The position numbers were made by a program, and so were the translations under genes. From contig NW_026889767.1 in assembly GCF_033153115.1 (NCBI RefSeq), positions 2,976,001 through 3,040,000 on the forward strand: a stretch of 64,000 nt of DNA. Direction: 5' to 3'. This document shows positions 6,287 through 55,300 of this stretch, piece after piece (position 1 is the first letter of the stretch; each line of letters opens with the position of its first letter). The notes under the pieces were generated by a model that was not told where the DNA came from, did no database searches, and saw only the letters and a program-made list of their open reading frames with translations. This DNA is from Saccostrea echinata (Eukaryota).

Positions 6287-6332
6287 TATCGATGTTGACC
6301 GAAATCAATACTATGAAATTGAAGTTATTGGA

Positions 6333-6564
6333 NNNNNNNNNNNNNNNNNNNNNNNNNNNNNNNNNNNNNNNNNNNNNNNNNNNNNNNNNNNNNNNNNNNN
6401 NNNNNNNNNNNNNNNNNNNNNNNNNNNNNNNNNNNNNNNNNNNNNNNNNNNNNNNNNNNNNNNNNNNNNNNNNNNNNNNNNNNNNNNNNNNNNNNNNNNN
6501 NNNNNNNNNNNNNNNNNNNNNNNNNNNNNNNNNNNNNNNNNNNNNNNNNNNNNNNNNNNNNNNN
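6333..6564. other. Assembly gap (N run)
   Basis: 232 N bases. Confidence 0.99.
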
Positions 6565-9542: not shown

Positions 9543-11126
9543 TGCTTGTCAGATAATTTTGGGAAGTTGCCCCCCCCCCCCACACACACACACATACTTT
9601 TGTTCAGTTTAATTTTCTTTTCTTTTTTCGATTTAATAAAAACAAAGATTATTTGCATTTGATCTTTTGAATTTTCTTACACGATTCTGTTATTTGTTTC
9701 TAAAACAAACTCTTTTCTGACATTGTATCAAAATATTATCTGAAATTTTGTCCATCGTCTGGAAAAAAAAATCCTTGATGGAATTCATAATTGTACCGAT
9801 GTTACGTCGCCGTATGATATACCAGGGCTCCCAGTATTTAGGGCGTTCGAATTAGTTACTTTCAGTGTATCATATTTAACTACATTAACACCAGCAGTAA
9901 TGATGTGTTCAACGGTGCAGTAATTGTGAAACATTCGTAGAAAACAAAGGAGTAGACTTCATTTGGGAATATGATGGTATGCAGGATTGAATTATTTATT
10001 ATTAAGAATGTGACTTAAGTTCACATCATCTTCACATTGCTTATTTCGGAAAGGAAATATGCTTTCACTATCTGTATAGGAGCCAAAATCTCTAAACAGA
10101 ATTATTTATAGACTTGATCCTTTTGTTTTGAAGTATGACCCTTCAAATAAAATTTGGGAATCTTTCCTGAAAGATCACTTTATGGTGTTTAGACATGAGT
10201 CTTATCATTTGAGGGATTTTAGAATTTAGCAAACTAATCGGCACCAACTTATTGCCTTTCCACAATGAGAAGGAACAAAAAATCGTGCATCAATTTAAGT
10301 GACCTTGATAGTCAAGAAACAAACATGAATACTGAAGTTCTATCAGATATGTATAGTGTACTACAGTTAACTATAATTTTTACTACATATGCATAGTAGT
10401 TGGGTTTATTATTGTAAATACTTTGATTTATTTTGGAGCTCTATTTGATAACTTTCTTTAGGTTAAGGACCTTTTTGTTATTAAAATTTAATTTCAATGA
10501 AGTAAAGAATTTAAGATTTAATAATTTTGAGGTCATAATAAAAATACTATTATTTAACATAGAAATTTTAAATTACTTTAACTCAAACTTTGATACTATT
10601 GTAAACTATGAAATCAATAACTATAGTGACCTAAAGTATTTTTGGTTAAGTATATTCCCCTTATCTGTATTTCTTTTAGATTATGAAAAGCAATCGACAG
10701 GTTTGGTCATTTTTAGATCACTGTGTACATGTAACCGTATATACAGACGTCAAGACTTTTTTTTCGAAACAATGTTTTATTTTATAAATACATAGAAGAA
10801 ACCTATGTGTTTGAAAGACATTTTAAAGTTTAATTTAATCAAATTAGCTTAAAGATGTCATATCAGTGTCATATTAGCTTAAAGATGTCATATCAGATGT
10901 AATCTGAAACACCATCATCAGATTATTTACTTTTAAAAGCATAAAAATTAATGAAAATATACTTTTCCGTTTATAAGTTTACTATAAAAAGACACTTTTT
11001 ACTCAATAAAAAATCATTAAAGACATTTTTTATATTGACTGAAAACTTGATATTTTCTACTTGAATAAGTATAAGACATACGAACGAGTGGTTTGGTTTT
11101 ATTCATTTCAAGACGAACACAGCATA

Positions 11127-14007
11127 TTATTTCTTTTTGCCCAGACAGCAAAGAAAACAGTGACTACAACCTTTCCTTGTACAGTGATTGAAAAGGTGTT
11201 CTTTACGAAGCTGTGGATACATCTTTACATATTCATTCAATTCCACTTCTCCGTCATCTAAAGGGGGAATTAAAAGTCAAATCACATATTCATAAAAGAA
11301 TTTTGAAGAAAAAATTAACTTCTGAAAAAAAATATATATAATCTGAAAAAAATATATAATAATCTTTTAAAAGCCTAATAATTACTACTGTATTAAGCTA
11401 GAAAAGTACTGACATTCCCTTTTATTGCTGACAAAGACAATTAAGGATATGTCTTCACTACGAAACTAAAACACATACTGACGTTTCTACAGGCAAGACC
11501 ATCTTTAAAAATATCTTGTATACAGACCAACTTGCTAAAAATGATAACAATTAAGATTTATTTTTAATCTGTAGTAAACCATAGTTTTATTCATTCCAGA
11601 TTTTTTTTAATTCCGTCAACAAATATTCTAATTATATAAATGCCTTCAATTTTAACAGCTTTTCAAAAACTCTGCATTGATGTTGAAAATTTCTGGTAAA
11701 AAATTTCCCACCTACCTCTTGACTAATTTCTCTACCCTGAGTCGGGAGAGGCAATCAAACATTATTTAGGAATTTGCCCATTGTTGATAAATTTAGAAAA
11801 GTGCTGACAATTCTTGTTGGTGCTGATAAACTTTAAATATAAATAAGTACTGTCTTTATTCCTCCCTTTCGGGGAGAGTGCAGAGGTGTAATTGTTTAAT
11901 GAAAGGGAAGTTGAATTTAATTTAGAAATATAATTTTTAACAGACCTTCTTGCTCCTATGATCAACCTACAGTGGACGTTTTAGTTGAAGTATTTTGAAG
12001 GGGAAACAAATAAATTATTAAAAACCTTTCAGCAGATTAGCCATCCCTAAATTTCTTTTAGTGATGTTTTAATGAAGAAATAGGGTGATATACAGTAGTA
12101 ATTTCTTACTCTTGATTCTGCGCATGTGAGTTAAGGCTAGGTATAGGCTTTTCTATGCAAATGAACTAATAAAAATGTATAAGAGGTATATTTATTATTC
12201 AGAGAGAGTGTTGATTTATTTTCTTATGCATACTTAGTACCCACGATATGTTTTAGCCAGTACACACTATGACGTCATATTATGACGTCACTGATCTTTC
12301 CTACTGGAGGTAATAAAACACATCAACAAAACAGCTTCGGCGCAAGGGATTACCCTACCTATTTTTACATAAAAATTGTATAATGCTAAGAAGAATATTC
12401 TATAGATTAATAAAACTGCTGCACAAATCCTATGCATTTTCTCATTTGATCAGAATTTGAGAAGACTTATACCGGACTGTACATTTTTACCCTTATTCAT
12501 CTTAAAACTTTACAAATAGAAATTATACAGTTAAGCTGTTGATATTTGTGCTGCAATACCAGCAAACTTTGGAATATTTAGCTTCTAAGTATACCTTGTT
12601 TGAGTTGAATAAAATAGAGCATGCCCTTGCGCCGAAGCATTTTTGTTGATATCTATTATAATCTCGTGTAGTAAAGAACAATGACGTCATAGTATGACGT
12701 CATAATGTGTACTGGCTATCTCATGTCGTGGGCACCAAGTATGTATCAGAAAATAAGTTTGAACTTTCTCTGTATAATAGATATAGTCCTTAGGCATTTT
12801 TATTAGATTATTTGCATAGAAATGCCTATACCTAGCCTTAACTCACCTGCGTGAATTATAATTATAATTTTATTTTCCCCTAATGTAACCCTCATTTTGG
12901 TTATTGATGTAAAAATCAATTAATCAAATCTTTAATGTAATGTTTGTCAAATATTTTGCAAATACCGTAACCCATTTTGTACAAACTGGGTGAAAAATGA
13001 TGATCTGTTTTGAAAATCTCAATGGTTTTAAAAAAGAAAACAAAATTAATATTGTCTGAGATTTAATACACAGTATCGTCAGCATGTATCTTTATTTTTA
13101 AATGAATTATGACTGTTTTACTCAGGTGCAGCACACGTGCTTGTTAAATCAATACCGTCAAGTCAAGTAAGTACTCTTGTTTTATCTATTTATACCACAG
13201 CGACATTTGGCAAGAATATCCTTTAAGTAAAAAAAATTCACCGTTGATTGTGAGGCATATTGACATAAACTTCAAAAATGTCAGTACCTTTCTAACTTAG
13301 TTGTGTGACGTCAAATTATTTCATCAAACGATTTTAGTTCGAAACATAAGCTATTTTGACTCTAAAATCTAGATAGATAAACTACAAATTGCAATCCATT
13401 TAACTCTAGCACAAATTCTTTTTATACATTTAGCTGTGGTTTAAAAAAAATATAAGATAGAAAGAATCAAAAATCAAATCACAAATTCATACGGTTCATG
13501 TCTAGACTTTCAAAAATCATTCCAGCTTCAATGTGTCCTTGGGCAACAAAAAGGAACTCGGTTCTTTGAACTCTACCATCGCTGTTCAGATCATAAACTT
13601 CAAAGGCACAGGGAAGTTTACTTTTACTACTCTGGAAAAAAAAACATTATTAATGAATTCTCTGATTATTTGTTACGCCAATAGCAAAAAAAGACCTTTG
13701 TCTTATATAGTAAGGGAGTATTTTCCAAAAGTGCATTATACCTCTGGTTTGAGTTTTAAAATTTGAAAAAAACACGTTGTCTGATATTTTTCTGGTCACT
13801 TTCATTTTTATTTAATTAACACATTCTTTGTTTACTGTTAAATTAAACTAATATGCGCTACTGTAAATTAATATAAATATATGTATCTTAAAGTGATAAG
13901 ATTCTTTTTAGATTCAAACGATTAAAACAAAATGACGGTACCTTGAGTGGCATTTTTCCAGCCGTTCCATACACAAGAAGAAGCGACAGAAACACTTTCA
14001 GTATCAT
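11127..14007 (-). CDS. Secreted two-EF-hand precursor with C-terminal Cys-rich peptide, copy A (111 aa)
   Basis: Coding exons 14007-13942, 13631-13493 and 11257-11127; all introns GT-AG, phases 0 and 1 compatible. A 5'UTR exon ends at 14104. Translation: MILKVFLSLLLVYGTAGKMPLKSSKSKLPCAFEVYDLNSDGRVQRTEFLFVAQGHIEAGMIFESLDMNHDGEVELNEYVKMYPQLRKEHLFNHCTRKGCSHCFLCCLGKKK*. EF loops are DLNSDGRVQRTE and DMNHDGEVELNE. Confidence 0.9.
12121..12851. mobile_element. MITE with ~228 bp TIRs, inserted in the last intron of copy A
   Basis: 12121-12348 is the imperfect reverse complement of 12624-12851. The element is absent from the paralogous arm, whose empty site near 19360-19377 reads TTGATTCTGAATTA on the minus strand, implying a 2-bp TG duplication. 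Confidence 0.9.
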
Positions 14008-15409
14008 TGTCTTCTGTAATAAAAAGCAGGGACAGACATATGTATTATCAAGAGAAACTGTTTAGTTCTTAAAAGATTTCGGCCAATTCAAGGGTGGCCT
14101 TACCTTGCAATTTAGAGCAGAAATATAGAATTCACTATCAGTACCTGATATTCATAAAGAGCTACATTAGTTTCACATACATTATATATGTTTATTCAGT
14201 AGAGAATTCCATTTTCTGATTGGACTATCTAACGTTCTTGTCAAAATCCTGCAAACTGTTGTATATAAATGATCACTTGACTACAAAATATCTGTAACGA
14301 TTGAGAAATCGTGTCAGAAATACGGAAATCTTTCGAATCTTTTGCCTCTTGACATATATTTGAAGTAGCAGAATGTCAGTTTTATTTTTCAGAATTATTA
14401 AAATTTGCTATTTTGCTACTCTTCAGAGAACATCTGGTTTTCTCTAAGATGAATTATCAGGGGAAAAAACCAACACAGGAATTAAAAGCTATGAATTATG
14501 TTATTTATGTTTCAAACTATATCATTCTTATATATATTAAATTTTATATATTATCCTTCTCATACGCGTGCTGGATAGTATTCATTAAATAAACCCATGC
14601 TTAATCCACGGGTATGCTTTATCATTAGCACTTCCGTTTTTTTTTTTTTTTTTTTTTTACACAATCCCTCGCTTCAATATGTAGATTTATCAAAACTTCT
14701 ATTTGTGAAAATACTGCGTTATCAAATAAATGCTAATGAGCAAAAATGTTCCTTAAAAACATGAATTCAGGCTCATTATACCTCAATGAAAAGTCATATT
14801 TTATAAATGTATTGGTTTGATAAACGAATTGGCTACTGCGATGATGTTATTCCCCCTCCCAAACATTCTCATAGGAAACGTTATGTTAGTTGGTGGAATA
14901 TTTTTTGGTCTGCTTTACCAAAAAATATAATTGTGTATAACAATCATTAATTACGTCGTTCCAGTCTTGAAAAAAAAATTGGAAGATACGTTTAGGCTAA
15001 TATTTAAATCATTATAACAAACAGTTTGATTTCAGACTATTTTTTTTCAATTTGTAAATTATATGCATTACGTGTATGTGTATTTCAACGACCAATTGCA
15101 AGGAGGGTTTTCTTTCATGTATTATAATAAAATATTTTTGTGATGTCACTGAACTTTCCTAATCACGTGAAGGACACATAATTTTTCTCAAATATTATGT
15201 ACAGACATTGTTTCAGAATCAATGAGTAACAAAATAATTATGAACGCTTTTATTACAGAAGTAAACTCAAAGAATTCTACAGCATTTATAAAATGCTCGG
15301 GATATTGAGATCTGGCTTTTTGATCTAAAGTAAAAATTCTATGCTGACTTCGAGTTACCCACACATATTCTCCATTGTAGTAAATCCAAAACTGAGTTGT
15401 GAGATCTGA

Positions 15410-15605
15410 ACTCATTCCATAAGCAAAGACATGGTTTGAATACAAACAGTTTTTGAACTAAGGTATAATACTGACAGAAAAGTGGATGTCAGAGGGTTTT
15501 TCAACAATTGCATTTAAAGAAAGTACATGTATTTTACAAAACCCCGTGGTCTTTATGTTGAGACATTGTTTCCAGATATAACCTATCATTGGATTTTATT
15601 TTTTC
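15410..15605 (+). mobile_element. Decayed Penelope-like retroelement fragment (RT C-terminal part)
   Basis: Same-orientation homolog of 22590-22770. Residual similarity to the ARAC..Y.QFL..G..LT.K...QGFQQ segment. Confidence 0.55.
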
Positions 15606-18037
15606 TAACCTATTTCATACCATATGTTAAACCATTATTTTTCATACAATATTTAACTACAGATTACCCCGTCTACCTAATCAATACAACGGATTCATGG
15701 CAGTCGTGACCTCCACCTAGACACCTGGCATCAGTTGTAAAACTTCGTAGAATTTCTTTCAAAAACCAAATAGCAGGTTTTATGTAATATTCTTTATTAT
15801 ATATTGAACAACAATTGACTATGTTCATTTTGACTGGTTAATTACCTTGAAAGTTGGCCAAATGATTTATTCAAATCGATTTGCCCATATTCAAAATTTA
15901 TAATAATTTTAAGATATGTCACATTTAAAGGCTGATATCAAGTAATCTCATTTAAAGGCTCTAAAAGTAAAAAAAAAAAAAATCATGAATCAATAATATT
16001 TTAATATGACCTTTTTTCTGCTTTCCCCAGCGGAAAGAACAATTAAGCTGATTTGATATTCTCAAGCTTAACAAGATCTTGATCAGTGAAAAAAGTATAT
16101 GTGTAAAACAGATCAACGTTTGTTCAAATAATGACTCTTATGTGTTAAAAGGGTCACAATAGTGGATCAAAATATTACATCTGTGTTATAAGAAAAAGAA
16201 CTAGAAGTGTAAAAAATAAAAATCCAAATCATTTAAGTGATTTTAACATGCATGTATCTTCATGTTGTTAGAGTTAAGTTTTGTTCAAATCATGACAACG
16301 TCGGGGAAAGGTACGGCCACAGTAAGGGATCAAAGAATTACATAAAGTATAAAGGAAGAATGGTGAGGTTCAGGTTATTGGTAAAATGTCACTGTACCAG
16401 CTGCAGTGAATTCTCTGAACTTTCATCATATTGCCATCTGACCCTCATCTTACTGCAAACTGGGGTTGATAAGATAGGGAAAGTGACATAGTTATTATAT
16501 TCCTTTCATATAACATGCAGAATTTTTTAACAGTTTTTTTTTTTTTTAATTTAGTGTCTAGACTTTTGTTACAAGTTTCAGTACGTTGTTAACCAGAGAA
16601 TTTTGCAACATAATATCGTTAATTCTTTCTAATTACTGTAAAACAGCACGTTCAAACAAAGACTAAAAACGAGAATTTAAAATGCTCTCTATACTCACCC
16701 ATAGACAGAGTTAAAATTTATAAATGATATATACAATACACCTGCACAAATGATCCATAAGAAGTGATTGAAGATAATCTGTGTGTATGTATAAGAGAAA
16801 GATGAATCTTACCGGGGGGTTGTATCCAATTTTGGATTTACTACAATGGAGAATATGTGTGGGTAACTCAAAGTCAGCATAAAATTTTTACTTTAGAACA
16901 AAAAGCCAGATCTCAATACCCCGAGCATTCTATAAATGCTGTAGAATTCTTTGAGCTTACTTCTGTAATAAAAGCGTCCATAATTATTTTGTTATACTCA
17001 TTGATTCTGAAGCAATTTCGGTACATAATATTTGAGAAAAATTATGTGTCCTTCATGTGATTTGCATAAGTCACGTGACATCACAAAAATATTTTTTTAT
17101 AATACATGAAAGAAAACCCTCTTTGCAATTGGTTGTTCAATTATACATACATTTAATGTACATAATTTACAAATTGAAAAAAAAACCTAGTCTGAAATCA
17201 AACTGTTATAATGATTAAAATATTAACCTTATGACGGCCTAATCATTTTTCAATTTTTTTTTTTTAGAAAGGAACGGCGTAGTTAATGATTTTTATACAC
17301 AATTATATTTTTTGGTAAAGCAGACTCAAAAAATTTTCCACCAACTAACCTAACGTTTCCTATGAGAATGTTTGGGAGGGGGAATAACATCATCGCAGTA
17401 GCCAATTCGTTTATCAAACCAGTAAATTTATAAAATATGACTTTTCATTGAGGTATAATGAGCCTGAATTCATGTTTTAAGGAACATTTTGCTCATTAGC
17501 ATTTATTTGATAACGCAGAATTTTCACAAATAGAAGTTTTGATAAATCTACATCTTGAAGCGAGGAATTGTGTAAAAAAAAAAAAACGGAAGTGCTCATG
17601 ATAAAGCATACCCGTGGATTAAGCATGAGTTTATTTAATGAATACTATCTAGCACGCGTATGAGATAAATAATATATAAAATTTAATTTATAAGAATGAT
17701 ATAGTTTGAAACATAAAGAACATAATTTATAGGTTTAAATTCCTGTGTTGGTTTTTTCCCCTGATAATTTTTCTAAGAGAAAGCCAGATGTTCCCTGAAC
17801 AGTAGCAAAAATAGCAAGTTTTAATAATTCTGAAAAATAAAACTGACATTCTGCTACTTCAAATATATGTCAAGAGGCAAAAGATTCAGAAGATTTCCGT
17901 ATTTCTGGCACGATTTCTCAATCCTTACAAATATTTTGTAGTCAAGAACTAGTGATCATTTATATACAACAGGTTGCAGGATTTTGACAAGAACGTTAGA
18001 TAGTCCAATCAGAAGATGGAATTCTCTACTGAATAAA

Positions 18038-18090
18038 CATATATAATGTCTGTGAATCTAATGTAGCTCTTTATGAATATCAGGTACTGA
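18038..18090 (+). promoter_or_regulatory. Candidate TATA-type core promoter of EF-hand copy B (mirrored near 14140-14190 for copy A)
   Basis: TATATAA at about 18040, some 85 bp upstream of the 5'UTR donor at 18124, and retained in both arms. Confidence 0.35.
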
Positions 18091-18220
18091 TAGTGAATTC
18101 TATATTTTTGCTCTAAATTGCAAGGTAAGGTTACCCTTGAATTGGCCGAAATCTTTTAAGAAATAAACAGTTTTTCTTAATAATGCATATGTCTGTCCCT
18201 GCTTTTCATTACAGAAGACA

Positions 18221-19745
18221 ATGATACTGAAAGTGTTTCTGTCGCTTCTTCTTGTGTATGGAACGGCTGGAAAAATGCCACTCAAGGTACCGTCATTTTG
18301 TTTTAATCGTTTGAATCTAAAAAGAATCTTATCACTTTAAGATACATATATTTATATTAATTTACAGTATTAGTTTAATTTAACAGTAAACAAAGAATGT
18401 GTTAATTAAATAAAAATGGAAGTGACCAGAAAAATATCAGACAACGTGTTTTTTTCAAATTTTAAAACTCAAACCGGAGGTATAATGAACTATTGGAAAA
18501 ATGCTCCCTTACTGTATAAGACAAAGGTCTTATTTTTGTTATTGGCGTAAAAAAAATATTTAGAGAATTCATTAACTTTTTTTCAGAGTAGTAAAAATAA
18601 ACTTCCATGTGCCTTTGAAGTTTATGATCTGAACAGTGATGGTAGAGTTCAGAGAACCGAGTTCCTTTTTGTTGCCCGAGGACACATTGAAGCTGGAATG
18701 ATTTTTGAAAGTCTAGACATGAACCGTATGAATTTGTGATTTGATTTTGATTCTTTCTATCTTATATTTTTTTAAACCACAGCTAAATGTATAAAAAGAA
18801 TTTGTGCTAGAGTTAAATGGATTGCAATTTGTAGTTTATCTATCTAGATTTTAAGAGTCAAAATAACTTATTTTTCGAATTAAAATCGTTTGATGAAACA
18901 ATTTGACGTTTCACTACTAAGTTAGAAATAACTGACATTTTTTAAGTTTATGTCAATATGCACTATAATAAACAGTGAATTTTTTTTACTTAAAGGATAT
19001 TCTTGCCAAATGTCACTGTTGTATAAATAGATAAAACAAGTGTACTTACTAAACATGATGGTATTGATTTAACATGCACGTGTGTTCCACCTGAGTAAAA
19101 CAGTCATAATTCATTCAAAATTAAATATACATTCTGACGATACTTTATATTAAATCTCAGACAATATATTAAATATTTTTCTTTAAAAACCACTGAGATT
19201 TTCGAAAACAAACATTTTTCCAAAATTTGTACGAAACAAGTTACGATATATTGCAAAATGTTTTTTTTAAAAAAAAAACATTCTATTAAAGATTTAATGA
19301 ATTGATTTATAAATTCATAACCAAAATGAGGGTTACATTAGAGGAAAATAAAATTAAAATAATAATTCAGAATCAATAGGAAGAAGTTACTACTGTAAAT
19401 CACCCTATTTCTTCATTAATCACTAGAAGAAATTTAGGAATGGCTAATCGGCTGAAAAGTTTTGATAATTTACTTGTTTCCCCTTCAAAATATTTCAATA
19501 AAAACATTCTACTGAAAATTGATCATAGAAGCAAGGAGATCTTTTGAAAATTATATTTAGAAATGAACTCAACCTCCATTATGTTAAAAAAAAAAAATAG
19601 TCCTCTGCACAAGAATTGTCAGCACTTTTCTAAATTTATCAACAATGGGCAAATTTTTAAATATATATATATAGTTAGTATATTTGTTGACGGAATGAAA
19701 AATAAATCCGGAATGAATAAAATTATCATTTACTAGATATATAGA

Positions 19746-19789
<44 letters not shown>

Positions 19790-20219
19790 TAATTGGGATC
19801 ATTTTTAGCAAGTTGGTCTGTATACAAGATATTTTTAAAGATGGTCTCGGCAGTAAAAACGTTAATAACTGTTTAGTTTTGATGTGAAGACATATCGGTA
19901 ATTGTCTTTGTCAGTAATAAAAGGGAATGTCAGTACGTTTCTAGCTTAATACATTCGTAATTATTAAAAAAAAAAGTTTTAAAATAATAATGGTATAATT
20001 TTCTCGTAAATGATTTCTTTTTTCAAAATCTAACTGTTTTCAAAATTCTTTTACGCATATGTGATTTGACTTTCAATTTCCCCTTTAGATGACGGAGAAG
20101 TGGAATTGGATGAATATGTAAAGATGTATCCACAGCTTCGTAAAGAACACCTTTTCAATCACTGTACAAGGAAAGGTTGTAGTCACTGTTTTCTTTGCTG
20201 TATTGGCAAAAAGAAATAA
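18221..20219 (+). CDS. Secreted two-EF-hand precursor with C-terminal Cys-rich peptide, copy B (111 aa)
   Basis: Coding exons 18221-18286, 18587-18725 and 20089-20219, all GT-AG. A 5'UTR exon ends at 18124 (AAG|GTAAGG); AATAAA at 20243. Translation: MILKVFLSLLLVYGTAGKMPLKSSKNKLPCAFEVYDLNSDGRVQRTEFLFVARGHIEAGMIFESLDMNHDGEVELDEYVKMYPQLRKEHLFNHCTRKGCSHCFLCCIGKKK*. Confidence 0.9.
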
Positions 20220-22109
20220 TATGCTGCGTTTGTCCTGAAATGAATAAATGCAAACCGATCGTTCATATGTCTTATACTTATTCAAGTAAAAAGATATCAC
20301 GATTTCAGTCAATTTAAGAATATCTTTAATATTTTTATATTGCGTAGGAAGTGTCCTTTTATAGCAAACTGATAAGGAAACAAACTAGTTTAATTAATTT
20401 TTACGCGTTTGAAAAGTAAATAATTTGATGATGGTGTAATGGTATCTTTAAGCTTGAAATCTTAGTTTTTAAGAATGACTTTTTAAAATTATCACAAGTC
20501 CATTAACATGAAAAATAAAATTCTTTTTAATTTGATTAAACTTTAAAAGTTGTCCTTTAAACCCATTGATTTCTCTGTGTATTTATAAAATAAACCATTG
20601 TTTAGAAAAAAAAAGTCTAGACGTCTGCAGATACGGTTACATGTACAAAGTGATATTAAAATGAGCGTACTGGTAGATGCTTTTCACAGTCTGGAATGAA
20701 TACAGATAAGGAAAATATACTTCACAAAAAATACATTACTTCACTATAGTTATTTCAAGTCTACAATAGTACTAAAGTTTGAATTGAAGTAATGTAAAGT
20801 CTTTACTAGGTTAAATAATTAGTATTTTTACTATGATTTCTAAATTATTGTATCTTAAATCCATTTCTTCATTGAAATTAAATTTTAGTCACAAAAATGT
20901 CCATAACCGCAAAAAAGGTATCAAATAAACTCCACAGAAAATAAAAAAATTTATACTTGCTAGAAGAATTTTAATAAACTATGCATAAGTAGTGCAACTA
21001 TTCACTGTAGTAAACTATCAATGTCTACAGTAAATCAAAGTTAACTATAATTAGTTTTTGTTGGGTATTAATCAAAATGGCTTGCCTGATGATTGCAAGC
21101 ACCAGAAAATTGTGTTGTCAAAAAATTAAAAAAAAATGGCAGCGAGAAATAATTTCAGTATTAATATTTGTTTTTTGACCATCAAATTGATGCACATTTT
21201 TTGTTCCTTCTCTTTATGGAAAGGCAACAAGTTGGTGCCGAATAGTTTGCTAAATCCAAAAATCGCTCAAATGATACGACTCATGCCTATACACCATATA
21301 ATGATCTGTCAGGAAATATTCCCAAAATTATAAGTGTTAAATTCAGACACAACAAAAGGATCTAATCTATAAATAATTCTGTTTAGAGATTTTGGTTCCT
21401 AGACAGATATTGTAAACGCATTTCCTTTCCGAAGTAATTAAAGATGATGTGAACATGATGTAACATATTCTCAAAAATAAAAAAAAGTTCAATCCTACAT
21501 ACATGTACATGTGCCATCATATTCCCAATTGAAGTCTACACCTATTTTCTACAAATGTTTCGTAACTACTGCCCCGCTGTAGATATCATGACAGCTGATG
21601 TTAATGCAGTTAAATATGACACCTTGAAAGCACCTGTTTCGAACGCCCTATCTGCTGGGAGCCCTGATCTATCATGTGGCGACATACCATCGGTACAATT
21701 ATAAATTACTTCAAGGATTTTTTCCAGACTATCGGCAAAATGTAAGATAATATTTTGATACATTGTCGAAAAAGATTGTGTTTTAGAAACAAATTACAGA
21801 ATCGTGTAAGAAAATCAAAAAGGTCACATGCGAATATTCTTTTTTTTTTTTATTAGATCGGAAGTGATAAATAAATCAGATAGACTTCAAGAACAATATG
21901 TTAAAATACCAGGTGACAACTGCTTTTACAATATCGTCTTCGACAGCTGTGTTTAAAATGAACTAAGTTTGAATTCTACATTTAGGGAGCCAACTTATAA
22001 TAACAATTGACAACTTTAAGAGTAAATTTTTCAGATTCAGGATTCAAAGTTAATACCTTTAACATTCGGACAGTCAGCGAAGCTGATTCAGATTTTTCTA
22101 ATAAAGTAT

Positions 22110-49300: not shown

Positions 49301-52300
49301 AGTAGGTCACAGTGACCTACTTCTGAAATTATATGGTTATAATTAAATATTTAGGTATTAATTGGCATAGAATCATCAAACTTTGTCAGTTGTTGCATCT
49401 TGGGCCCTCGGAGAACGTCAACTGAAAAGTAGGTCAGCATGACCTTCTTTTGAAATTTGATGGCTTTATATAAATATTTCAGGTACTATTTGGCTTAGAA
49501 TGATCAAACTTAGTTGATGCATCTTGGGTCCTCAGAGAATGACAAGTGATAAGTTGGTCATCATGGCCTACTCTTAGGTACTAATTGACTTAGAATCATC
49601 TTGGGTTCTAAGAGTGTTTTATCTAATATGTAGGTCATGATGACTGACCTTTGGAATTTCAAGGCTTTAACTTAGAGGCTTCAAATAGAAGTGATAGGTT
49701 GTACAGTTTATCAGAAGAGCGATTCAAGGCCCTTGGGCCTCTTGTTACATGTTGTTTTTTGTCTGAATTTATTTTTATGAGACAAAAGCCTTGTGTTCAT
49801 TTGGGAGACATGATTTTAGGGTAGGATATCAAATGTATGATACAGTGCCTACTGTCCAATCCGACAACTGTGCAATCCAGCAAACTGGACTTTCTGACCT
49901 CATATATTTTTCCCAAAAAATTCTTTATAATTTTTATAGAATAAAGCATATTCCGACCACTGAACATTCCCAATTCCGGCACTTTTTTGTCAACGAAAGT
50001 AGATAATTACATATGATTTCCTCTGGGTAATCTGAAATAATTACATGGGTGTACCGTAATTGACCCCTGGCCAGGTAGCATGAAATTGTCCCCTTTGGTC
50101 ACAAGATTGGTCTACTTCGAGAGTAGATAATTACTTGCATGAGTTTGAAAGTGTTTATGTAAGCAATAAATGAACAGTTTTTGAATTTATGAATTAGGCA
50201 AGCAATTCTCTTTGTTGTTATCAATTTTATTCTCGCATTAACATGATAGCATCCGTGCGACAGAAAATTAAGAGTACATGATATTTCGATCGCCTTTACC
50301 TTTCAGAATAAATAAAGAGTCAGAATCATTCATAAAGCCATGTCGCAAAAAAAAACAGTACGGCGAACTACTGTATTATGTACATGTAGACAATACACGA
50401 TGTTGAAGGCAGCATCTTTTCTTATAGAAAATGTTTTATTTCCATGTTATTATACACTGAATTAAGCAAGACTGTGTACATGAAAGATTTGCCAAAAGCA
50501 AAAAATACTGCTTTTAAGTTGCCCATCAAATTTTAAAATATTATGTCTGCTGTTTTATGAAAATTCAACCACAATGTTCAAGAGTAACGTTCCATTTGTA
50601 TGAAAAGTGATGGTATTAATAGCACAGTCTATGCTGAGAAATAAACAATGGAAAAAAATCGGAAAGAAATGTGTAAAAAAAAAAATAATAATACTATGTA
50701 GAGAAGGTAGAGGAAATATTTCCTTTAATATCTACTGTCAGTAAGTAAAATGCTAAAAATTGAATTGCAACATCTCAAAGCATTCAGCACTTCCATCTGT
50801 TTTAAAAAATCATCATATATTACAACAATGCTATCACAAACGCTGTTTTTCAAAGAAACTAATCAGCTGAAGGTATATATTTAAAAACAAAGAAACACAC
50901 AATTATGCAAACACCTTGACAATTAAATACACGTGTACTTTAAACCTAATGAAGTCATCTGACTCCAGTCATAATGCTCAGAAATATTCAACACTGGCTA
51001 ATCCGACACTCTATGTAATCCGACATTGATTTTATTTCCCGCATCATGTCGGAAAAGACAGGTTTCACTGTTTTTCCAAGTGGTACTTGTATGAAAGTTG
51101 AGACAAGACTCTCTGTCAAATTACTGTACCTACCTTGAGAGTAGAATAAATTAAATACAGACCTTGACAGTAAAATCTGATATTAAACAGTACTTTCATT
51201 TACAGACAAATGCAAAATCTCATGAGAAAAATAACTCAACACTGGAAAATCTCAATGCAGAGACAGAGAATTCTATAACTGGAGCTGTATCAGGTCTACA
51301 ATCAGTGGAAGAAGAAGACCAGGATGATGTGTCAAGTAAACTGTGTGGTGAAAACAATAACACAAACAAGCAACATCTGTCTCAGAATGTGGAACACAGT
51401 GTTGAGCTTCTTGCTACCCAGCCTGAAAAAGATACCTCAGGATCATCTACCATGAATATTCCTGATTCTGAAATGAATGAGCAAGTTGAAACACATCCTG
51501 TTTTAGGAACGTCAGAAAAAGATACAAGTGCAACATCAACCTCAAATATTCCAGGGACAAATTCACATGAGAGAGATGTTAGGGCAACTACACTGGACAA
51601 ACAGTTGGAGACACAGAAGTTGTTGGCAACAGCATTCTTGCATTCACTTAATATACTTGGACCTCAGACCTCTGCTCAAGGCAGTAGCTCATTTTCTCCA
51701 CAGCTTAGCGGTTCAGCTCAGGAAATGGTTCAGAACATACTGGAACTATGTCGGGCTCCAGAGCAAAATCCTCCTATTCCAACCAAAAATCAGTTGGAGG
51801 AACCTAAGCCTGCAGAAAGTTTTTTGGCTCTGTCAGGGGTAAATACCAGTATGCTATCTCCAAAACAATCAACAATTGTATCAAGTGTTCAAAATTGTGG
51901 AGCAAATGAGACAGAAACATGTGATACTGGACTTAGGACTCCTTCACAGACCCACATGTTATCAGATTCAACATCTTTGGATGCGATTACGTCTTCCATT
52001 GCACATGAACCATGTTCAGCAATAACTTTCATGCCAGCAGCAGTGTCTGAAATATCATCATCATTCACCAATACTTATTGTATAGATGGAACAATAGGGA
52101 CAGTATCTTCTACATCTTCAAACGCCCCCAAGAAACAAACCTCAACCACTTATGGTTTTAGTACCACATCAAAGTCCAAATCAAAATTGAAGGGTAAATC
52201 TTTGTCAAATGTGCTTGAGGAGCCTGTGACTCCTAGGTATAGTACTCGTAAAAGGACCATGAATGTAATCGTACAGAAACTTGCTGAGGAGGAGAGTGAG

Positions 52301-55300
52301 TCTGACTTGAATGATGACAGCGATAATGATCCTAACTGGGAGGAAACAGAGAGGAAGAAAAAAGTAAGTGCCTCATGTGCATCTGTTCTGTGTATGAGAG
52401 AGAAAGAGAGAGACTCAGAGAGAGATAATCCCCTCGCAAAAAAATACTGTAATACATATACCTTGTATACACAGTTATTTTTGCCTCATTTAATTTTTGC
52501 CCTATTAAACTTGTTAACAATTTTGACCCTTATTAAATCACCTATAGCATATATAGGTATTGGTGGTTTTCATTTTGCCCACTTTTAAATTTGTCCACTG
52601 AGATGGGGGCAAAAGGGGCAGAAATGCTAATAGACTGGTGACAAAAATTCCTTGCATAGATTATGTACAGATTGTCTCTAAAAATAGCCTAAGATTTTAG
52701 TTTTTTTCAGGATTATTACTAAATTTTGGAATAAATAGAATGCGGTGTGTATTTTAAGATATGAGGTGGTATATAAAAAAAATTGTTTGATAAATATTTC
52801 TTAATTTTCTTTATACAGTCATCCAGTGGCCACAGAAATCCCAAAAAGGTATGGTTTAGTTTATTACTGAAAAAAGAAAATAAAAAACCATCCTCGTGTC
52901 TGCTTAAATTAATGTCAGATAAGAGAAATTTATGGCATTCTGTGTTCCAAAGCTCTCTGACTTTAACTTTTTGCCTAGGACACTGATTTCTCATCAGATT
53001 CTGATGACTTAATGGATTCAGAAAAAGATGAGGATGCTTTTGATGAAGATGATGATTATGAAGATGAAGATTCTGCACCTTCAATGGAGAAGCCTCATTC
53101 TGATGATTTCAAACGAAAAATAATCTTGTATGCTGAAAGACATGGCAACACCAAAACTGCCATTAGATTTCATATTAAAGAGGAAATGGTTTGGAATTGG
53201 AGGGAAGAAAAGGACACATTATTTTCTGTGAAAGGGTCTTCATCAAATGATGTTCTTACATCCAGGTCCCAGGTAAGCAACAACACAGAACAGTAAATTA
53301 GGCCCTCTCCTGACTGAGTGGTTAAAAATGGCTGTACCCAAAACATGTTTTAACCTTCAAGAAACATTATTTAGCTCACCTCGACGAAGTCAATATGAGC
53401 TTATGCTATACCCCCGGCGTTGGCATTAGCGTCAGCGTCCCGGTTAAAGTTTTTGGAGCAGGTCCATTCCCAAGTAACTATAAGCCCTACCTGGACCAAA
53501 CTTGCATGGGTAATGCATCTAGGGGTGGACACTACCACACTTGCTTCAGATGCTGATTCTGACCTTCATTTTCCAGATGAGTGAATTTTAGCCATACTTT
53601 AGCAAAATGAACATGGATGATGAATCTAGGGATCGACACTTCTAGACTTGCTTTGGATGCTGAATGTGACCTATATTTTCCAGATGAGTGAACAGGATAA
53701 TTTGTTTTTGGAGAAGCTCTAAAATTATATGTCCTGTTATGACTAAGCTTGTATGGATGATGCTTCTAAGGATTGACACTTCCAATCTTGCTTCAGATGT
53801 TGGAACTGACCACATTTTCTTGATTAGAGAACAAAAAAAAAGTTTTTGTAGCAGGCCCATTTCCAATTAATTGTAAGTCCTACTTAAACCAAACTTGCAT
53901 GAATATTGAATCTTGAGATTACACTAACTAGGAAAAATCAGATGTGAGATTTTCCAAGTACTGAAAGATATCATTCGTTGAGGTGAGCTTCGTAATCTTT
54001 GATTACCTATATTTGAATTTTTATGCTAATCTTTTTCAAACATTTAATGTCATGAATTCGAATACTGAGAGGTTTAGAATCATTAAATCCTGTAAGATGA
54101 AGCATCTTGGGGCCATAAAACACATTTATTAAAAAGTAGGTCATAGTGACCTACTTTTTGAACTTTGCAGGCATTCGATTTCAAAGCGTTTAGAGGCATA
54201 TTTTGGATATTTTAAGGCCTATGATCATAAATCTTTGTAAGTTTATGCATGTTGGGTCCTCGAAAAATGTCAACTGAAAAGTAGGTAACCAAAACCTACT
54301 TTTGAAATTTTATGGCTATATTTAAATATCTTTGGCACAATTTGGTTTAGAATCATCAAACTGTGTCAGTTGATGTACACATATCTTGGGTCCTCAGAGT
54401 AGGTTGACTGAAGAGTAGGTCACAGTGACCTTCTTTTCAATATATGTGACTGTAATTAAATATGTCAGTCACTAATTTGCCTAGAATCATCAAACTTTGT
54501 CAGTTGCTGTAGCTTGCTTCTTCGGAGTAAGTTGACTCTAAAGAAGGTCACCGTGACCTACTTTTGAAACTTTATGGCTTTAATTAAATATTTCAGGTAC
54601 TAATTGGCTTAGAATCATCAATTTTTCTTCAGTTGATGCATCTTGGGTCCTCGGAGTACGACAACTGAAAAGTAGGTCACCGTGACCTACTTTTGAAATT
54701 TTATGGCTGTATTTAAATATTTTCATGTTCTATTTGGCTTAGAATCATCAAAGTTTGTCAGCTGTTTTTAGAAAAGTAGTAAAAATATGCAAATGCAATT
54801 TATTACTCGGACAAAGTTTCAAACATTTTTAAGTATAATTCAAATTCCATGGTTCCCCATCACTCTGCTCTGCTTAATTCTGTCCAGCATTATTCATAAA
54901 CTTCATAAATTAGTTATATTAGTCGATGTAAAAATTTCAATTAATAGTTCATTTGACTTTATATTATTTAGAAAAATATCAAAGCCTACGAATCTGTTTT
55001 TACCACTCAAACGATGTATATTTTTACAGGGTATTACAGAAGAGGAATATGTCACTGCGGCAGTTGTAGAATACAACAAGCAGAGAATATACTTGGGAGT
55101 TATAGAGAAGGACAAGTTGACGTACTGCAAGACTTTTCTCGGAAAACTCGATGAACAATTTAGCATGTCTAATATTAATGCGAATTCATTAATACTAAAC
55201 AAGAAAGACATACAAAAATTTGGCAAAAATGAAAAACAATTTCTCATTTTGTCCTTTTCATGTCCCATTAAAGACTTAAAACTAAATATTAACCAAGAAA

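Follow-up and report, generated by a model that had tools for sequence, protein, structure and literature searches.

The 64,000-nucleotide stretch of Saccostrea echinata DNA analysed here (the window) harbors two intact, unannotated genes, gene A (11127-14007, minus strand) and gene B (18221-20219, plus strand), each encoding a small EF-hand protein with a signal peptide and a short, cationic, cysteine-containing tail. On sequence grounds, the pair belongs to a family restricted to oysters (S. echinata, S. cucullata, Crassostrea virginica and Ostrea edulis), and this family of secreted EF-hand/Cys-tail genes is so far uncharacterised. It is plausible, if short of probable, that the tail is cut off as a free amidated peptide from an EF-hand precursor.

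Each gene consists of three coding exons (Table 1), and the product is 112 amino acids long with zero internal stops. All four coding introns of the pair are bounded by GT and AG; in both genes the one that follows exon 1 is in phase 0 and the one that interrupts EF loop 2 is in phase 1. These canonical splice sites and uninterrupted reading frames confirmed the claim of an earlier, sequence-only reading that the pair is intact and spliced. The gene models lie far beyond chance, since the RefSeq model of the S. echinata paralog P0001 (XP_061178592.1) agrees with them in exon boundaries and phases, and an annotated ortholog from S. cucullata, P0005, is 67% identical to the gene-pair protein. 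The boundary of coding exon 2 is common to all paralogs. The A and B proteins differ at four residues (S26N, Q53R, N76D and L107I), and three codons of the coding sequence differ synonymously.

Table 1. Features of the gene pair and of the surrounding duplication, with positions in the window; candidate features were predicted from the sequence.
Feature	Position	Strand	Remarks
Gene B candidate promoter TATATAA	18040-18046	+	
Gene B candidate non-coding exon, end	18124	+	
Gene B candidate 5'-UTR intron	18125-18214	+	
Gene B coding exon 1	18221-18286	+	start codon and signal peptide, 22 codons, then GT donor; identical in gene A
Gene B coding exon 2	18587-18725	+	first bracket Cys (LPC), EF loop 1, start of EF loop 2
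Gene B EF loop 1	18626-18661	+	coding exon 2
Gene B EF loop 2, exon 2 part	18716-18725	+	
Gene B coding exon 3	20089-20219	+	remaining EF loop 2, second bracket Cys, tail, stop
Gene B EF loop 2, exon 3 part	20089-20114	+	
Gene B tail	20166-20216	+	decapeptide 20175-20204, Gly 20205-20207, KKK 20208-20216
Gene B stop codon	20217-20219	+	
Gene B polyadenylation signal AATAAA	20243-20248	+	
Gene A candidate TATA	14188-14182	-	mirrors gene B
Gene A candidate 5'-UTR intron	14103-14014	-	mirrors gene B
Gene A coding exon 1	14007-13942	-	signal peptide
Gene A coding exon 2	13631-13493	-	EF loop 1 at 13557-13592
Gene A coding exon 3	11257-11127	-	tail 11130-11180, stop 11127-11129
Gene A decapeptide	11142-11171	-	last residue Leu
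Gene A polyadenylation signal AATAAA	11103-11098	-	
Inverted duplication	9634-21852	.	roughly 12 kb; carries genes A and B head-to-head
Innermost arms of the duplication	15227-15394 and 16827-16994	.	unique spacer ~1.4 kb
High-copy foldback repeat	12121-12853	.	733 bp; inserted in gene A intron 2 only

In both products the signal peptide, on which inspection of the sequence agreed with the earlier reading, is followed by two EF loops between two bracket cysteines, and then by HC-TRK-GCSHCFLCC(L/I)-GKKK and the stop codon; the LPC...NHC bracket around two canonical loops and the tail itself read in both translations exactly as had been claimed. EF loop 1 is DLNSDGRVQRTE in both genes, and EF loop 2, which straddles the exon 2/3 junction, is DMNHDGEVEL(D/N)E. 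Both loops have the 12 residues of a canonical EF loop, with Asp/Asn at positions 1, 3 and 5, Gly at 6, a hydrophobic residue at 8, Glu at 12 and flanking helices, and together they make an EF-hand pair (PF13499/PF00036). The EF-hand domain is acidic (net charge about -4) and the tail cationic (net +5), with two His residues flanking its Cys motifs.

Exons were searched separately, and the ortholog P0005 was used as a full-length proxy. Exon 2 alone gave EF-hand matches in Pfam that were below threshold (21.5 bits) because the intron splits the EF domain; full-length P0005 scored above the cut-offs (EF-hand_5, 39.7 bits; EF-hand_7, 35.6 bits). In both of two AlphaFold runs, one of them with P0001, helix-loop-helix was formed twice (pLDDT 84-93), and the tail was unstructured and exposed (pLDDT <50). 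DSSP placed bridge residues of the P0001 model at 26 and 91, close to both bracket Cys, and in the models the ends of the EF-hand domain lie side by side, probably tied by a Cys-Cys bracket. Foldseek, a PDB profile search and the ESM Atlas returned only generic calmodulin/NCS/calcineurin-B type EF pairs or unrelated EF-hand clusters.

Family members were recognised by a signal peptide, L-P/S-C before loop 1, a phase-1 intron in loop 2, the second bracket Cys and a tail in which basic residues enclose a Cys/Trp core. The gene pair has all of these, and intron positions are common to the members, whose products are about 105-125 aa. RefSeq names them "uncharacterized" or "hippocalcin-like" (LOC133187252, LOC134230154, LOC111126571, LOC111123512 and LOC111121915). 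Exon-wise profiles found matches within the S. echinata genome at E values of 1e-20 to 1e-26, and only 12 in a library of 1.84 billion representatives (E 1.7e-20 to 8e-10). A profile search retrieved seven full-length clusters at E<=1e-39, all from Ostreidae, below which a gap extended to E about 1e-18, the level of exon fragments and generic EF-hand proteins. Two proteins of about 1,230 aa each (P0002 and P0009) were discarded as spurious profile matches, the repetitive P0002 matching only via a recurring LQRD-like motif. A single-sequence search with P0005 found itself as the sole match, and a word-indexed search with the exon-3 profile gave zero candidates. The gene-pair protein was absent from a collection of 5.8 billion proteins, and its lack from public protein sets may mean that expression is weak or conditional. 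The protein collections searched hold one of at least six tail-bearing S. echinata loci. A literature search by locus and accession names returned no paper and no peptidome data on the family loci, and the view that the architecture is not a described family held throughout that literature.

Some relatives are tail-less and terminate at the bracket Cys. In hand-built models of distant S. echinata relatives, a basic-flanked Cys/Trp loop lies between the signal peptide and the EF domain, parted from the latter by RK or RRR; these relatives appear to carry a tail-like loop at the N-terminus instead of the C-terminus.

Shared across the family are the EF-hand core with both bracket Cys, a hydrophobic core of Cys/Trp, and basic residues at the C-terminus or close to it. 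The peptide of the A/B pair has basic sites on both sides (TRK before it, GKKK-stop after it), and in relatives it is preceded by KR, RR or KK and, in most cases, followed by K/R. Taken together, every tail but that of the O. edulis member has KR, RR, KK or RK after its second bracket Cys, and most members have one to three Lys/Arg before the stop. The number of tail Cys ranges from 0 to 4 (two in most paralogs, none in O. edulis), and every complete mature member has an even number of Cys, which fits a predicted bracket disulfide plus one or two intra-tail disulfides. Charges run from -1 to -8 in the body and from +4 to +7 in the tail, with the exception of the O. edulis member P0007 (+2 and +2).

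Conservation of the tail was less uniform. The Gly amidation donor occurs in only about a third of the tails: in four tail types (the A/B pair, the C33 paralog, P0003 and P0019, the last from C. virginica with GRR) it immediately precedes the terminal basic run, P0010 ends in Gly itself, and Trp or Asn takes the position in P0005, P0001, P0017, P0008 and two C14 paralogs, the ortholog P0005 ending in CCVW-KKK. The prediction that homologs would keep a basic site, a Cys-rich tail and G-K/R thus held for the basic site (except in O. edulis) and the basic C-terminus, but failed for Gly. Likewise, the expected variation of the tail was seen among distant paralogs, with core versus tail conservation of, for example, 64% vs 33% and 58% vs 11%, but not between close relatives, where tail and core were equal (65% vs 66%, 80% vs 76%). 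The decapeptide core matches the ortholog at 5/11 positions, and the peptide was not more conserved than the rest of the precursor.

Basic sites and a Gly-basic end together form the processing scheme of convertase, carboxypeptidase and PAM. Were the gene-pair product processed in this manner, the acidic EF-hand domain would be the carrier or pro-domain for the cationic tail, and the tail, held by internal disulfides, would be the effector. Processing would take place at the conserved basic flanks, with a convertase-type cut after RK/KR and subsequent trimming of terminal Lys/Arg by a carboxypeptidase, which in the A/B pair would expose Gly for amidation and yield GCSHCFLCC(I/L)-NH2 or a variant with one more residue. 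That Gly recurs before the basic run in four tail types speaks for such a precursor, as do the basic-flanked tail layout, the even Cys counts, the charge split, the faster change of the tail among distant paralogs and its exposure in the AlphaFold models. The N-terminal, basic-flanked loop variants would do so as well if modelled correctly, and mytimycin offers a precedent, by analogy, for an EF-hand and a Cys-rich peptide joined in a precursor across a dibasic site. Against it, RK after Thr is a weak convertase site, the Gly donor is unconserved, with Trp in its place in the ortholog, and the tail is no more variable than the core between close relatives. The existence of tail-less relatives also implies that the EF domain is functional by itself, and is not merely a pro-domain.

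Precursors of the cathelicidin and tachyplesin type combine a conserved, folded or acidic pro-part with a short, variable, cationic, disulfide-stapled peptide that is often Gly-amidated. The layout of the putative oyster precursor resembles theirs without sequence relation, its pro-part being an EF-hand pair, and the tails of P0010 (CICYRYICYC) and P0001 (RRRWC...) look like beta-hairpin peptides. Given that distant paralogs differ more in the tail core than in the EF domain, and that charge is distributed as in cationic-peptide precursors, the likeliest role for the tail would be in host defence or toxin-like, rather than in neuropeptide signalling.

The mytimycin peptide has about 54 residues, 12 of them Cys. 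Mytimycin precursors consist of a Cys-rich antimicrobial peptide and an anionic EF-hand extension, with a dibasic site between the two (PMC8004829). They resemble the oyster proteins as secreted bivalve precursors in which a basic site lies between a Cys-rich cationic peptide and an anionic EF-hand part, the function of which is likewise unknown (PMC8004829). However, their order is peptide first and EF-hand last, the reverse of that with the C-terminal oyster tail, and their peptide is a Cys-rich antifungal, unlike the oyster loop of 7-11 residues and 0-4 Cys (PMC8004829). Mytimycin is also restricted to Mytilida and the oyster family to Ostreidae, and no protein named mytimycin was among the best 120 profile matches. 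The comparison proposed in the earlier reading, including the opposite order, is therefore accurate as an analogy and not as family membership. The C-C-CC pattern, correctly named as framework XVI, is likewise taken as an analogy only; it is that of the conotoxin Q-superfamily peptide qc16a (PMC4278219). Such peptides and the A/B decapeptide share about 10-11 residues, four Cys and the C-C-CC spacing, but the likeness goes no further than this pattern: it is the signal sequence that defines the Q-superfamily, no EF-hand is described for its precursors in the review (PMC4278219), and the oyster frameworks, unlike framework XVI, are variable.

A serious possibility, though not the one we prefer, is that the protein is secreted uncleaved and that the attached tail works in cis beside the bracket disulfide. 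The tail could then serve as a cationic Trp/Cys anchor that attaches the protein to membranes, mucus, chitin or shell matrix, cross-link separate molecules, or act as an internal, Ca2+-switched ligand of the EF cleft. An EF module that functions alone agrees with this, as does the loop at either terminus in the hand-built models: the bridge residues of P0001 suggest that both termini project from about the same point, and since the bracket would hold them together, loops attached to either one would take up the same position on the intact protein, which fits an uncleaved in-cis function equally well. The mantle and shell of molluscs have secreted EF-hand proteins of their own (EFCBP, calconectin and SMP5), and these, like the SPARC-type EC domain, have a signal peptide and an extracellular EF-hand pair. 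SPARC EF hands are disulfide-stabilised; P0005 showed a weak match to SPARC_Ca_bdg (PF10591) at 19.1 bits, below the cut-off of 22, and a Pfam search of P0001 gave no match to PF10591. However, EFCBP, calconectin and SMP5 show no sequence link among the best 120 profile matches, and their descriptions mention no basic-flanked Cys/Trp tail. Docking of the tail onto the EF cleft found no support in either AlphaFold run, and an anchor would require neither the dominant KR right after the bracket Cys nor the recurrent Gly before the basic run.

It is improbable that the tail handles metal, with C-x-x-C, C-C and His binding Zn or Cu as thiolates alongside Ca2+. Oysters belong to an animal group known for Zn/Cu accumulation, metallothionein-like spacings (C-x-C, C-x-x-C and C-C) abound in the tails, and the A/B pair has two His beside these motifs; but the protein enters the oxidising secretory pathway, the even Cys counts fit disulfides, His is absent from other tails, and the O. 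edulis tail has no Cys at all.

Hardly to be expected, too, is a neuropeptide or hormone precursor releasing GCSHCFLCC(L/I)-NH2 from neuroendocrine cells to act on a receptor, even though the signal peptide, RK site and GKKK-stop fit the convertase/carboxypeptidase/PAM scheme. A true neuropeptide precursor conserves its peptide best; in the oyster family the decapeptide core is the part that varies most among distant paralogs, which speaks against a classical neuropeptide, as do its limited match to the ortholog, the Trp at the Gly donor position and the confinement of the family to oysters. The HCS2/pleurin precursor, whose EF-hand region is C-terminal, is encoded by a Helix gene reportedly described by Bogdanov et al. 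in 1998. It offers a precedent, since an EF-hand region and short amidated peptides occur together in this secretory precursor of a mollusc (cited in PMC8398477), but its peptides are linear PRXamides in several copies, it is neuron-specific, and it lacks a Cys bracket or Cys tail. The neuropeptide literature searched names no EF-hand-plus-tail family. Three candidates with suggestive names were rejected: CCWamide is an eight-Cys agatoxin-like peptide and CCCGS a 42-residue eight-Cys peptide, both unlike the A/B tail, and the CLCCY precursor yields unrelated linear peptides.

The two genes lie head-to-head in an inverted duplication (Table 1), the arms of which are 95.6% identical over 17951-18220 and differ by 13-22% in intron 2 and flanks. 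The high identity extends over intron 1, so that the similarity of A and B may reflect gene conversion rather than selection. The 733-bp insertion and the divergence of the arms rule out one locus read twice; and that the genes are silent or decaying duplicates, or an assembly artefact of a single locus, is very improbable, for although neither was found in public protein sets and one same-genome paralog was, their reading frames, splice sites, TATA boxes and polyadenylation signals are all intact and S. cucullata keeps the ortholog intact.

A broader proposal, which we put forward as doubtful, is that of an oyster superfamily in which a disulfide-closed EF-hand pair is a Ca2+-sensing carrier for disulfide-looped Cys/Trp peptides of 7-11 residues, attachable at either terminus and released at di- or tribasic sites. 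GCSHCFLCC(I/L)-NH2 would be the S. echinata example of this new class of mollusc defence or signalling peptides, with Ca2+ controlling folding, packaging or release. That the protein collections include so few of the tail-bearing loci illustrates how readily small multi-exon genes for secreted proteins can be overlooked. Release of the tails would mean that oysters possess an unexplored set of tiny disulfide-stapled peptides, small enough for synthesis and direct antimicrobial, ion-channel and metal-binding tests. It would also be the third independent case in molluscs, after mytimycin and HCS2/pleurin, of an EF-hand module accompanying secreted peptides, and would make the unexplained role of these modules testable. 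If the protein instead stays uncleaved, the genes would represent a lineage-specific extracellular Ca2+-binding family in a calcifying, metal-accumulating animal.

The sequence-only reading had proposed two complete spliced genes, and reading of 11000-20400 together with assembly of the proposed exons bore this out. All introns of the two mirror-image genes (gene A and gene B) are GT-AG; intron 1 is in phase 0, and intron 2, in phase 1, interrupts EF loop 2. At mirrored positions, both genes have retained a TATATAA box and an AATAAA signal, together with a candidate intron in the 5' UTR. Conceptual translation gave products of 112 aa each, and the genes differ by 4 residues and 3 synonymous codon changes. 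Each product starts with a hydrophobic leader carrying small residues at -3 and -1 (T-A-G), judged, by inspection only, to be a signal peptide. A short basic linker comes next, followed in order by L-P-C, two EF loops, N-H-C and a tail of 17 residues; both loops match the canonical pattern at positions 1, 3, 5, 6, 8 and 12. We refer to the cysteines of L-P-C and N-H-C as the bracket cysteines, and to the residues after the second as the tail. Searches and folds of the window genes used single exons or database proteins, and the joined 112-aa product was only described.

Coordinates of the gene pair, its surroundings and related loci (plain numbers, window positions; C, contigs of the S. echinata genome)
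Feature	Position	Strand	Remarks
Inverted duplication (~12 kb palindrome), genes A and B head-to-head	~9634-21852		unique spacer of ~1.4 kb
Gene A, coding exons	14007-13942, 13631-13493, 11257-11127	-	exon assembly from window sequence
Gene B, coding exons	18221-18286, 18587-18725, 20089-20219	+	exon assembly from window sequence
Foldback repeat, 733 bp	12121-12853		within intron 2 of gene A; missing from gene B
Tail-less relative	C9:35929127-35930022	-	C-terminus is the bracket Cys; candidate N-terminal loop after the signal peptide, R-CRIRLWGTC-ILER (with the residues after it, R-CRIRLWGTC-ILERK-SGG)
Tail-less relatives	C9:35936810 (neighbour of the preceding locus), C54:54400596
N-terminal-loop sub-family	C28:1087540-1089400		hand-built: signal peptide, RR-CSNNWLFVWC-RRR-GGG (RGGGESDGT-LPC), EF-hand exon
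Similar exon 2 copies	C28:5735661, C28:3701524, C46:2057615
C16 paralog	C16:10962838-10964200		K-WCVGW-QRK directly after the signal peptide; no Cys-rich C-terminal tail

Identity between the arms of the duplication is patchy, reaching 96.4-100% in the coding exons, 95.6% in the proximal promoter and 96% in intron 1, with 87% in intron 2, 78% in the 3' flank and 79-83% in the distal parts. This pattern, and the insertion of a foldback repeat in gene A only, indicate that each arm is an old locus of its own and that the duplication is no echo of the assembly. The foldback repeat (arms of 308 nt, 77% complementary; spacer of 115 nt) contains TGACGTCA palindromes and looks like a MITE, with 1,149 candidate genomic copies at first look and 40 scored copies that are 92-98% identical. 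The patchy identity is compatible with gene conversion between the arms, centred on the gene. Compared with purifying selection, conversion fits at least equally well, since the high-identity patch takes in intron 1 too. Elsewhere in the window, open frames at 39166-39627 and 43119-43553 carry helix-turn-helix DNA-binding domains of the Tc5/CENP-B type (the first at Pfam E 1.6e-10) and are probably remnants of a pogo/Tc5-like transposase. A Ser/Thr-rich open frame of 474 aa at 51164-52588, with no Pfam match, may represent one large exon from some unrelated gene, and a run of 232 N at ~6290-6520 adjoins a TA-type microsatellite.

When 5.8 billion proteins were searched with a full-length family profile, seven clusters, all of them from oysters, scored E<=1e-39; after a gap, the matches resumed at E ~1e-18 with fragments of exons and with generic proteins of the EF-hand type. 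The 112-aa window protein was returned neither by this profile nor by a single-sequence search with the S. cucullata protein P0005, and in the collection P0001 (XP_061178592.1 by exact look-up; encoded on C14) is the only S. echinata locus of the family. A profile of the exon-3 peptides gave only 12 matches among 1.84 billion representative proteins. P0005 (XP_062567916.1), 67% identical to the window genes, is their ortholog. The remaining members, found in Crassostrea virginica, in Ostrea edulis and again in S. cucullata, are named "uncharacterized protein" or "hippocalcin-like"; no paper mentioning any locus of the family was found in the literature. Exon-wise search of the S. echinata genome located tail-bearing paralogs with the same exon boundaries at three loci on C14 and one on C33, while C16 gave an exon-2 match only, with a candidate exon 3 that lacks a Cys-rich tail. 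AlphaFold, supplied with the family alignment, modelled the EF pair of P0005 and P0001 confidently (pLDDT 84-93) and left their tails unstructured (pLDDT <50). Foldseek, a PDB profile search and the ESM Atlas returned only generic EF pairs of the calmodulin, NCS or calcineurin-B type, and the Pfam matches were to families of the EF-hand, with SPARC Ca-binding below threshold.

Tails following the second bracket cysteine
Member	Tail
Gene A/B pair	TRK-GCSHCFLCC(I/L)-GKKK
S. cucullata ortholog P0005	TRK-GVCDCWLCCVW-KKK
C. virginica P0008	KKR-CWWCSNCCN-KRR
C. virginica P0019	KKR-CWWCTNCC-GRR
C. virginica P0010	KK-ICICYRYICYC..., longer; last residue Gly
S. echinata paralog P0001	RRR-WCNGCTFW-KK
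S. echinata C14 paralog, first	KRK-WCIGICLW-K
S. echinata C14 paralog, second	KRR-YLCLLVICIW-RK
S. echinata C33 paralog	KRD-WCGVCIG-K
S. cucullata P0017	KRS-WCIICIW-KK
O. edulis P0007	without Cys; without basic site after the bracket Cys

Nearly all members have the following tail features in common. Immediately after the bracket cysteine comes a basic pair, in most cases KR. The core is hydrophobic, 7-11 residues long and dominated by Cys and Trp. Further basic residues lie close to the C-terminus or form it, and in most members the stop comes directly after them. The proposal, made from the window alone, that an amidated peptide may be released is partly supported: a layout resembling that of a precursor characterises the family, amidation does not. 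The Gly amide donor is not conserved: six tail types have Trp immediately ahead of the terminal basic run, four have Gly and one has Asn. For the putative peptide of genes A and B, the calculated mass is 1079.381 Da as an amidated decapeptide with two disulfides, 1311.498 Da when reduced and carbamidomethylated, 1137.386 Da with the Gly extension and 1207.476 Da with an additional Lys at the N-terminus. Every complete mature protein of the family has an even number of cysteines. Net charge is -1 to -8 in the body and +4 to +7 in the tail, with the exception of O. edulis P0007 (+2 and +2). Comparison of distant paralogs shows clearly higher conservation in the EF core than in the tail (for example, 64% vs 33%); between close relatives the two are equally conserved.

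In mussel mytimycin precursors, an antimicrobial peptide rich in Cys is followed by a dibasic site and by an anionic extension at the C-terminus, which bears an EF-hand of unknown role (PMC8004829). Conotoxin framework XVI is indeed C-C-CC, as the sequence-only reading had stated, and its member qc16a has 11 residues (PMC4278219); the tail of genes A and B has only the Cys pattern in common with it. Secreted EF-hand proteins of shell or mantle are already known (EFCBP, calconectin and SMP5). CLCCY, CCWamide and CCCGS, neuropeptide families that were also considered, are unrelated to the oyster family.

Weaker exon-2 matches in the S. echinata genome have the same L-P-C start and intron position, and three of these relatives stop exactly at the bracket cysteine, without a tail. 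[quoted passage not shown] The C28 locus yielded no exon 3, and the loop of this sub-family appears to correspond, at the N-terminus, to the tail that other members carry at the C-terminus. The C16 paralog has an odd number of cysteines, provided that its model is correct. If the models hold, the short Cys/Trp loop would be a movable module, occupying one of the two ends in members modelled at both. Loop and EF domain would then always be parted by basic residues, in what looks like a processing boundary. The bracket would bring both termini close to each other, and therefore a loop at either end would project from the same point of the intact protein; the P0001 model has bridge residues at 26 and 91 (DSSP). 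A loop that can lie at either terminus would cut both ways, as a processing boundary or as a position in cis on the intact protein. That the tail stays uncleaved and acts in cis is a real, if lesser, possibility. A core that drifts between conserved flanks is the reverse of the pattern of a neuropeptide precursor, and the neuropeptide reading shares the remaining probability with a metal-binding role and silent genes. The same pattern matches that of defence or toxin precursors, and we tentatively favour the reading in which the tail of genes A and B would be a processed, defence-like peptide.
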